Positions 30,476 through 30,501 of a stretch of DNA of 64,000 nt are shown here, in pieces. The stretch is from contig OZ076414.1 in the NCBI GenBank assembly GCA_964187785.1, positions 29,016,001 through 29,080,000 of the forward strand, in the 5' to 3' direction. The position numbers and the translations under genes were made by a program. The stretch is from Amphiscolops sp. MND2022. Lineage: Eukaryota. The notes under the pieces were generated by a model. It saw nothing but the letters and a program-made list of their open reading frames with translations, had not been told where the DNA came from and ran no database searches. The first letter of the stretch is position 1; every line of letters begins with the position of its first letter.

Positions 30476-30501
30476 GCGCGCCTAAAAGGCATTAGGCGCG
30501 C
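30476..30501. other. attP/loxP-like junction: GCGCGCCTAA-AAGGCA-TTAGGCGCGC
   Basis: Perfect 10-bp inverted arms (30476-30485, 30492-30501) flank a 6-bp core (30486-30491) identical to the 18S target hexamer. Confidence 0.9.

Follow-up and report, generated by a model that had tools for sequence, protein, structure and literature searches.

The junction of two head-to-tail element copies in an 18S rRNA gene of Amphiscolops sp. as a candidate recombination site

In a stretch of 64,000 nucleotides from Amphiscolops sp. MND2022 (GenBank assembly GCA_964187785.1, contig OZ076414.1, positions 29,016,001 to 29,080,000 of the forward strand; the whole stretch is called the window here), the 18S ribosomal RNA (rRNA) gene is interrupted by two head-to-tail copies of one element, and the copies meet in a 26-bp palindrome at 30476-30501. 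The question raised by this locus is whether the palindrome is a by-product of two insertions lying side by side or the site on which an enzyme of the element acts. An earlier note on this DNA had taken it for a loxP-like core, i.e. the junction of a circular form of the element frozen in the chromosome. With a probability of about 0.6, we read the 26-bp site as the attP-equivalent core (attP being the attachment site on the mobile partner) of a Crypton-like DNA element, one that uses conservative site-specific recombination to integrate into its target.

The junction and its 18S target

Alignment to Rfam shows the 18S gene to be split at position ~427 of the small-subunit (SSU) model by an insert of 8.75 kb. 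The 5′ part of the gene (25628-26064, + strand, positions 4 to ~427 of SSU_rRNA_eukarya) runs to the base before a hexamer AAGGCA, and the 3′ part (34821-36199, + strand, also from the Rfam alignment) begins with GCAGGCACGG. The insert consists of two head-to-tail copies of one 4.4-kb element that are 99.5% identical. Copy 1 (26071-30485, + strand, 4415 bp), delimited by self-alignment and by alignment of the copies, is bounded by the terminal inverted repeats TTAGGCGCGC (26071-26080) and GCGCGCCTAA (30476-30485), and copy 2 (30492-34814, + strand) has 4323 bp. The hexamer occurs three times, at the left junction between 18S and copy 1 (26065-26070, + strand), between the copies (30486-30491) and at the right junction between copy 2 and 18S (34815-34820, + strand), the order being 18S-AAGGCA-copy 1-AAGGCA-copy 2-AAGGCA-18S. 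The element reads in the same direction as rRNA transcription and sits base-exactly at a conserved rRNA position.

At 30476-30501 the sequence is GCGCGCCTAA-AAGGCA-TTAGGCGCGC, that is, the right 10-bp terminal repeat of the element, the hexamer and the left terminal repeat, the repeats being perfect inverted arms and the hexamer a non-palindromic 6-bp spacer. Pairing ends after exactly 10 bp, as the next bases outward, A 30475 and A 30502, are not complementary. The earlier note was thus right that perfect inverted arms enclose an asymmetric spacer, that the site lies exactly between copy 1 and copy 2, and that the spacer equals the hexamer found at both outer junctions. When the window was shuffled with its dinucleotides kept, 4 of 60 versions contained palindromes with arms of at least 10 bp and a 6-bp spacer, so the palindrome alone is weak evidence and moderately unlikely to arise by chance. 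Moreover, it follows automatically once 10-bp terminal inverted repeats sit side by side, and a loxP-like look alone cannot tell the models apart. The non-randomness of the junction rests on its exact position and on the threefold hexamer. In the core sites of tyrosine recombinases, two inverted binding arms enclose an asymmetric overlap, 6-8 bp long, that the target shares (PMC3212892); we found such a two-arm site with 10+6+10 bp in the window, its hexamer being identical to that of the 18S site, and with 9+6+9 bp at a second junction described below.

Just to the left of the hexamer the element has G and 18S has A, and just to its right they have T and G, respectively; hence the uninterrupted identity between the two is 6 bp. 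The earlier note had put the shared core at exactly 6 bp, which holds for the identical stretch but not for the similarity, as the left arm resumes its likeness to 18S after two mismatches. Taken with its next base (TTAGGCGCGCA), it matches the eukaryotic SSU consensus GCAGGCGCGcA at 9 consecutive positions. Because the left end of the element mimics 18S, the Rfam 18S match extends to 26138; the Rfam alignment sets the break inside ...AAGGaagGCA|GCAGGCGCG.... To the right of the hexamer (34821-34830) the host 18S copy reads GCAGGCACGG, where the eukaryotic consensus has GCAGGCGCGc. Target recognition probably proceeds through the hexamer together with the right half-site. An open reading frame (ORF) look-up inside the 18S 3′ part, aimed at an uninterrupted 18S gene (empty site) of the same organism, returned nothing on record.

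The two copies differ by 3 substitutions in 5′ non-coding sequence, a 20-nt length change in a (GA)n tract and a 72-bp indel, copy 2 being without the 20 nt of (GA)n and without 72 bp of the right subterminal region. Their coding sequences are identical and the frames of both are unbroken. These differences bear on the possibility that the dimer is the outcome of a tandem duplication or of unequal exchange within an orphan ribosomal DNA (rDNA) unit in decay, or of an assembly error, and that the junction is functionless. The setting would suit such an origin: the window belongs to contig ctg185512_101x_l (509 kb) of ENA assembly ERZ25074608, in which the rDNA unit is isolated, gypsy-type integrase ORFs flank the unit, a reverse-transcriptase insertion lies in its large-subunit (LSU) gene, and the arrays of related elements show many ordinary deletions and duplications. 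However, with 5 events between them the copies are not a single template that was collapsed or expanded, the boundary passes with base precision from terminal repeat through one hexamer to terminal repeat, ordinary unequal crossing-over needs more homology than 6 bp, and an independent junction of the same design is present on another contig. We therefore hold this origin to be very improbable.

Relatives of the element and a second junction

Evidence from relatives matters here because a transposase that makes target-site duplications would, on inserting into the repeated hexamer, give the same dimer. Diverged relatives with 35-98% amino-acid identity were found in the same assembly, namely in degenerate arrays on contigs ctg183454 (loci L001, L003 and L004) and ctg185760 (L007), as a copy on ctg181548 (L002) and as fragments on two further contigs (L008 and L009); a distant family is present in a second assembly (L005). 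All tblastn matches to the gene (128 of 128, across six loci) lie on one strand. The arrays are decayed, with stop symbols in 34 of the 128 exon matches (70 in all) and many matches cut by deletions, and exons 3-5 are uninterrupted in four relatives only. The arrays L003 with L004 and L007 are collinear and 98-99.5% identical, being either haplotypes or a segmental duplication; what sets them apart are several-kb deletions between adjacent copies, and two deletion breakpoints lie inside the hexamer, ~4 nt from a left arm.

The second junction, L003:17365-17388, came from searching for inverted arms set 6 bp apart; it lies between two different relatives and reads TGCGTCTAA-TACGCA-TTAGACGCA. 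Compared with the site in the window, each arm is changed at positions 5 and 9, counted from the spacer, and complementarity is kept. The layout around it (L003:17342-17414) is also that of the window, with the heptamer GACTAAC directly outside both arms and the inverted GTTAGTC 5 nt further. The hexamers of the family vary (AAGGCA, TACGCA and GACGCA), the bases common to AAGGCA and TACGCA being the last three (GCA) and position 2. The hexamer is thus not invariant in the family, and the arm on its right also mimics 18S, so that the earlier note had put the shared core too strictly.

A further set of junctions concerns a target outside rDNA, in exon 1 of the relatives themselves. The native site in exon 1 of the intact relative L002 is GGCATCTGT TACGCA AAAAGTTACTTGT. 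At L007:2249 a left-type junction has a family-A left arm after TACGCA, with the exon-1 start of a relative (GGCATCTGT) to its left. A right-type junction, in which a family-A-like right arm and AAGGCA are joined to ...AAAAGTTACTTGTGG, was found at L004:1765 and occurs four times across L004 and L007. The left-type junction thus keeps the TACGCA of the target and the right-type one carries the AAGGCA of the element. Because the two types carry different hexamers, target-site duplication is disfavoured and conservative site-specific exchange is favoured.

The explanation most directly concerned is a cut-and-paste transposon with terminal inverted repeats, a 6-bp target-site duplication and a strong preference for AAGGCA, the second copy of which entered the duplicated hexamer; the palindrome would then be an accidental composite and no recombination substrate. 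Such a transposon would account for the perfect 10-bp terminal inverted repeats and the identical 6-bp flanking repeats, and its second insertion into the duplicated hexamer yields exactly this dimer. DNA transposons in multicopy RNA genes are also known (Dada, PMC8869645; Pokey in 28S, PMC3849761). Yet Pfam finds no DDE or other transposase family in any exon, the hexamers at the exon-1 target differ (TACGCA left, AAGGCA right, the two not coming from one insertion), and the uniform orientation of all copies is not expected of a symmetric transposase site. We also considered a DDE fold for exon 3, with three strands, a helix and a first-strand aspartate, and gave it up because this aspartate is not conserved among relatives (D, T or E). 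The transposon explanation is thus distinctly unlikely, and conservative site-specific recombination remains our preferred reading.

Two candidate sites in the arrays were discarded. TGCGTA beside a left arm (L003:8979) could pass for an inverted core, and the paralogous array shows it to be a TACGCA junction altered by a 131-nt deletion and a substitution. A right arm with AAGGCA at the start of an ORF (MAPKRQKV...) could pass for native coding sequence; it is more likely a recombination junction, in view of a 14-nt identity with the right end of the element in the window and of the native TACGCA of the relative. At a non-rDNA locus on each of the two fragment contigs (L008:6330-6440 and L009:6690-6800), an 18S fragment of ~65 bp abuts exon-1-like sequence. 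This fragment corresponds, with few substitutions, to the stretch just upstream of the insertion site, and may be a relic of an 18S-inserted copy that was carried elsewhere.

Heptamers around the junction

The site in the window is accompanied by GACTAAC heptamers. One lies a single base from the right arm (30468-30474, + strand), and its partners beyond the left arm are at 30503-30509 (+ strand) and 30515-30521 (inverted). Copy 1 holds 25 in total, 19 on the + strand and 6 inverted, against an expectation of ~0.5. They cluster within a few hundred bp of both element ends and are found partly in an internal direct repeat of ~165 bp (26407-26570, + strand), which recurs at 29645-29807 (98%) and 30272-30426 (91%) and holds three heptamers in each copy. 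The heptamers, conserved beside the arms and clustered towards both ends of the element, are probably accessory binding sites. We thus expect the functional site to comprise the core and such accessory sites, and probably to exceed 26 bp. A simple loxP-type 26-mer, as the earlier note had proposed, is accordingly improbable; with the heptamers flanking both arms and ~25 of them near the ends, the likeness is to a complex attP. Two heptamers are intronic and may act as branch points. The same motif is present in each unit of the 177-bp tandem repeat in the intergenic spacer.

The encoded protein

The gene of copy 1 (27095-29379, + strand; 31516-33800 in copy 2) is predicted to encode 610 aa in five exons (27095-27754, 27887-28104, 28196-28490, 28562-28683 and 28842-29379, all + strand), according to a splice model with intron positions common to the relatives. 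The four introns are of the GT-AG type (132, 91, 71 and 158 nt), and the predicted frame of 610 codons has no internal stop. The exon boundaries recur in the relatives, as all exon-1 ORFs end in ...YLLILK|GT and the tblastn matches break at residues 220, 293, 392 and 432. Near the N-terminus there is a zinc-finger-like motif, CxxC...HxxxH, which is invariant among relatives. A polypyrimidine-AG acceptor-like site lies 15-20 nt upstream of the start codon in every family (window 27075-27094, L002:9975-10000, L003:14290, L003:18480), which suggests an intron in the 5′ untranslated region.

The protein has very few recognisable relatives. When 1.84 billion representatives were searched exhaustively with exon 3 by phmmer, 8 matches came up, all of them short unannotated ORFs, and a profile search of exon 1 against 5.8 billion clusters gave 14 proteins, all unannotated and all from ENA records. 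The family appears to be confined to two related assemblies among ~15 billion public proteins.

The catalytic residues of tyrosine recombinases are, in order, R, K, HxxR, H/W and Y. For some of these, candidates are well kept in the matches of the relatives, namely R311 (R in 16 of 19), K345 (19 of 22) and H429 (11 of 11), with Y438 (10 of 11) and Y454 (11 of 11) as the candidate tyrosines. We aligned phage P1 Cre with its natural relatives (16 members) into a Cre-family profile. In hhalign, the exon-3 family matched this profile weakly over 66 columns (probability 11.8%, E 0.0025, score 26.9), with K345 aligned to the invariant K201 of Cre; none of 300 column-shuffled controls reached 26.9, their maximum being 23.9. 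In a low-confidence model of exon 3 the chain forms a helix, three strands and a helix, and K345 lies at the turn between strands 2 and 3. For the region of exons 3-5 we built a query-anchored alignment of four relatives with stop-free, near-full exon matches and shared introns, and hhalign of this alignment against the single sequences of Cre and lambda Int gave nothing. Since the only link is the weak exon-3 match to the Cre family, the assignment to the tyrosine recombinases is plausible and not established. The recombinase of which the earlier note spoke as a given thus cannot be taken as an identified tyrosine recombinase.

The same protein could be a conservative site-specific recombinase that is not of the tyrosine type, i.e. 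a member of an unrecognised family with a short central overlap of 2-3 bp inside the hexamer. An orphan protein whose C-terminal tyrosine-recombinase motifs are not recognisable would fit such a family, as would hexamers that share only GCA and position 2, and deletions that break twice independently at ~4 nt from the left arm. Against it stand the exon-3 match to the Cre-family profile with the catalytic lysine in register, and the 10-bp arms with a 6-bp spacer, which is the usual geometry of tyrosine recombinases (PMC3212892). Moreover, Pfam as a rule picks up serine-recombinase domains with ease, and it shows none here. We consider an enzyme of this other type unlikely.

Proposed mechanism and points against it

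As we picture it, the 610-aa protein, probably a very divergent tyrosine recombinase, would bind the two 10-bp inverted arms, and strands would be exchanged within the asymmetric hexamer or at its edges. The same hexamer in 18S would serve as the target; it lies in a stretch that is universally conserved, and the sequence on its right resembles the left arm of the element. A circular copy integrating there would leave the hexamer on both sides. The dimer could then form in three ways, as a second circle may enter the junction of the resident copy, a second circle may enter anywhere in the resident copy by homology, or a dimeric circle may integrate; each of these routes would keep the circle junction as the internal junction. 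The asymmetry of the hexamer would fix the orientation, and arrays would for this reason be uniformly head-to-tail.

What the DNA itself displays is the anatomy of the junction, a second site that covaries, hexamers that are not duplicated and one uniform orientation. The circle-junction reading of the earlier note gains from this, as the site has the core anatomy of a tyrosine-recombinase site, equals the sequence that a circularised element would have, has a counterpart in L003 with two compensatory arm changes and goes with non-duplicated hexamers at the exon-1 target; it does not gain as to the class of the enzyme. We infer that class, and likewise the positions of cleavage, the circle and what the heptamers do.

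Several results weigh against the proposed mechanism. The left- and right-type junctions at the exon-1 target come from different places and not from one insertion, and the two deletion breakpoints inside the hexamer, at ~4 nt from the left arm, would also agree with a crossover of 2 bp at the centre. Neither a circular contig nor a junction outside arrays was found, and two scans of metagenome contigs of the Joint Genome Institute (JGI), the first with a left-end block that the families conserve and the second with a degenerate left end, had 0 matches each. As to the protein, sequence searches of Pfam, PHROG and PDB with every exon and with ten relatives gave no match, PF00589 of the tyrosine recombinases included. 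At the candidate HxxR motifs (395-398 and 429-432) the relatives have either R or K, and the register is ambiguous; both motifs are absent from the distant family L005. In the C-terminal half, where the HxxR...H/W...Y region is expected, no similarity between exons 4-5 and the Cre family was seen. AlphaFold models, made for exon 3 only, were of low confidence, with a mean predicted local distance difference test (pLDDT) score of 64 from the single sequence (the model described above) and 44 from a 7-row alignment, and Foldseek of the exon 3 models against the PDB had no match at E <= 0.001.

These results leave some room for a bolder proposal, in which the element encodes an undescribed family of eukaryotic site-specific recombinases with a compact attachment site, targets the universally conserved 18S hexamer as well as its own relatives and forms oriented arrays, the enzyme being either a tyrosine recombinase so divergent that the lysine hairpin alone can be recognised or no tyrosine recombinase at all. 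We regard this proposal as doubtful, and stay with the Crypton-like reading.

Comparison with known systems

Cryptons (e.g. CryptonF-1_cRei of Chlamydomonas, the Goodwin model) resemble the element in having one multi-exon gene, no reverse transcriptase and a length of ~4 kb, and in carrying a terminal sequence of 4-6 bp that is identical or nearly so to the target and is present on both sides after insertion. Their 4-6-bp terminal direct repeats, near-identical targets and rearrangements at such motifs are on record (PMC3212892, PMC9977147, PMC13465315), and the family described here likewise has near-identical secondary targets and rearrangements at these motifs. The short direct repeat by which Cryptons are recognised is found as AAGGCA at all three junctions of the window, together with the non-duplicated hexamers at the exon-1 target. 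Cryptons are, however, defined as being without terminal inverted repeats (PMC3212892, PMC13465315), and the element has perfect 10-bp ones, besides its heptamer arrays and 165-bp internal repeats. It also targets an rRNA gene and forms head-to-tail arrays, neither of which is mentioned for Cryptons in PMC3212892, PMC9977147 and PMC13465315. Further, the element exons have no match to DUF3504 or any other Pfam family, as a Crypton-type protein would, and no detectable similarity to tyrosine-recombinase models (Repbase Crypton proteins being outside this comparison). In its way of working the element is akin to a Crypton or to an integrase/att system; in view of the terminal inverted repeats and of the missing similarity to Crypton-related models, it is no clean member of the Cryptons.

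With the Cre/loxP system of phage P1 the site shares inverted arms and an asymmetric spacer that sets direction, and, for the circle that we propose, passage of a circle through the site. The profile of exon 3 aligns weakly with the beta-hairpin region of the Cre family, with the lysine in register, whereas the C-terminal catalytic half shows no similarity. The geometry of loxP is 13+8+13 bp, unlike the 10+6+10 bp of the element, and loxP has no counterpart to the flanking heptamers that suggest accessory sites. Lambda-type integrases have a complex attP made of a core plus arm-type sites. As there, the core overlap is identical to the target, one half-site of the target resembles an arm of attP, and many short repeats flank the core, which could bind a second DNA-binding domain (here the N-terminal zinc-finger-like one); the lambda record annotates binding sites around the core. 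The element differs from lambda in its eukaryotic host and spliced gene, no excisionase-like partner gene was seen, and hhalign gave no similarity to lambda Int.

Among elements specific to rDNA (R-type elements without long terminal repeats (non-LTR), the piggyBac element Pokey in 28S, and Galadriel and Beon in 18S; PMC10946416), a base-exact position in a conserved rRNA stretch is common, and the 18S element shares its unit with an insertion in the LSU gene that encodes a reverse transcriptase. The rDNA-specific elements covered by that 2024 review are retrotransposons and one piggyBac family, with no mention of a Crypton or a tyrosine recombinase, and none of them uses a recombinase of such a kind (PMC10946416). 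Unlike the non-LTR R elements, the 18S element is without a reverse transcriptase, no such domain or any other being found by Pfam in its ORFs. It differs from transposons of the Dada and Pokey type in having no DDE-type transposase and in the differing flanks at the exon-1 target, which are not from one insertion.

Among the classes of eukaryotic DNA transposon, the recombinase-driven elements of the Crypton type are understood least, and their ends are hard to define. No attachment site is laid out in PMC3212892, PMC9977147 and PMC13465315. Here, a complete site can be read from the dimer junction, is confirmed by a covarying second site and has its target at an 18S position conserved across eukaryotes. 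If our reading is true, the element would be a new class among the rDNA-specific elements and would bring with it a new, very divergent recombinase with a compact site.

Surroundings of the element in the rDNA unit

The window contains one rDNA unit by Rfam, made up of the split 18S gene, 5.8S (40066-40217) and LSU (42789-50404). The ORFs of gypsy-type LTR retrotransposons on the two sides of the unit (30-1907, + strand, and 59499-60641, - strand) have Integrase_H2C2 and rve domains, and because of these flanks the unit looks isolated or at the edge of an array. The LSU gene measures 7.6 kb as against 3.4 kb for the model, and includes an ORF of 1132 aa (45833-49231, + strand) with the reverse-transcriptase domain RVT_1 (E 1.6e-28). 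This insertion looks like an R2-type non-LTR element and is separate from the element in 18S.

The first internal transcribed spacer (ITS1), between 18S and 5.8S, contains eight tandem copies of a 358-bp repeat (37128-39933) that are 99% identical, and a copy with 61% similarity lies upstream of 18S (24005-24304). The intergenic spacer has tandem repeats of 177 bp (12884-13890), 553 bp (18021-18873), 189 bp (19596-21218) and 211 bp (22100-22521). The LSU match of Rfam has its 3′ end (50404) within a tRNA-Asp (GTC) gene (50352-50426), after which a ~825-bp repeat stands in two copies (50427-51827). A run of 129 N occupies 52051-52179. Outside the assembly, the unannotated record NZ_CP104508.1 (1247 bp), filed under a complete genome of E. 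coli, matches the 18S of the window at 91.5% over 130 nt, and on this similarity it looks like eukaryotic rDNA contamination in the E. coli assembly.
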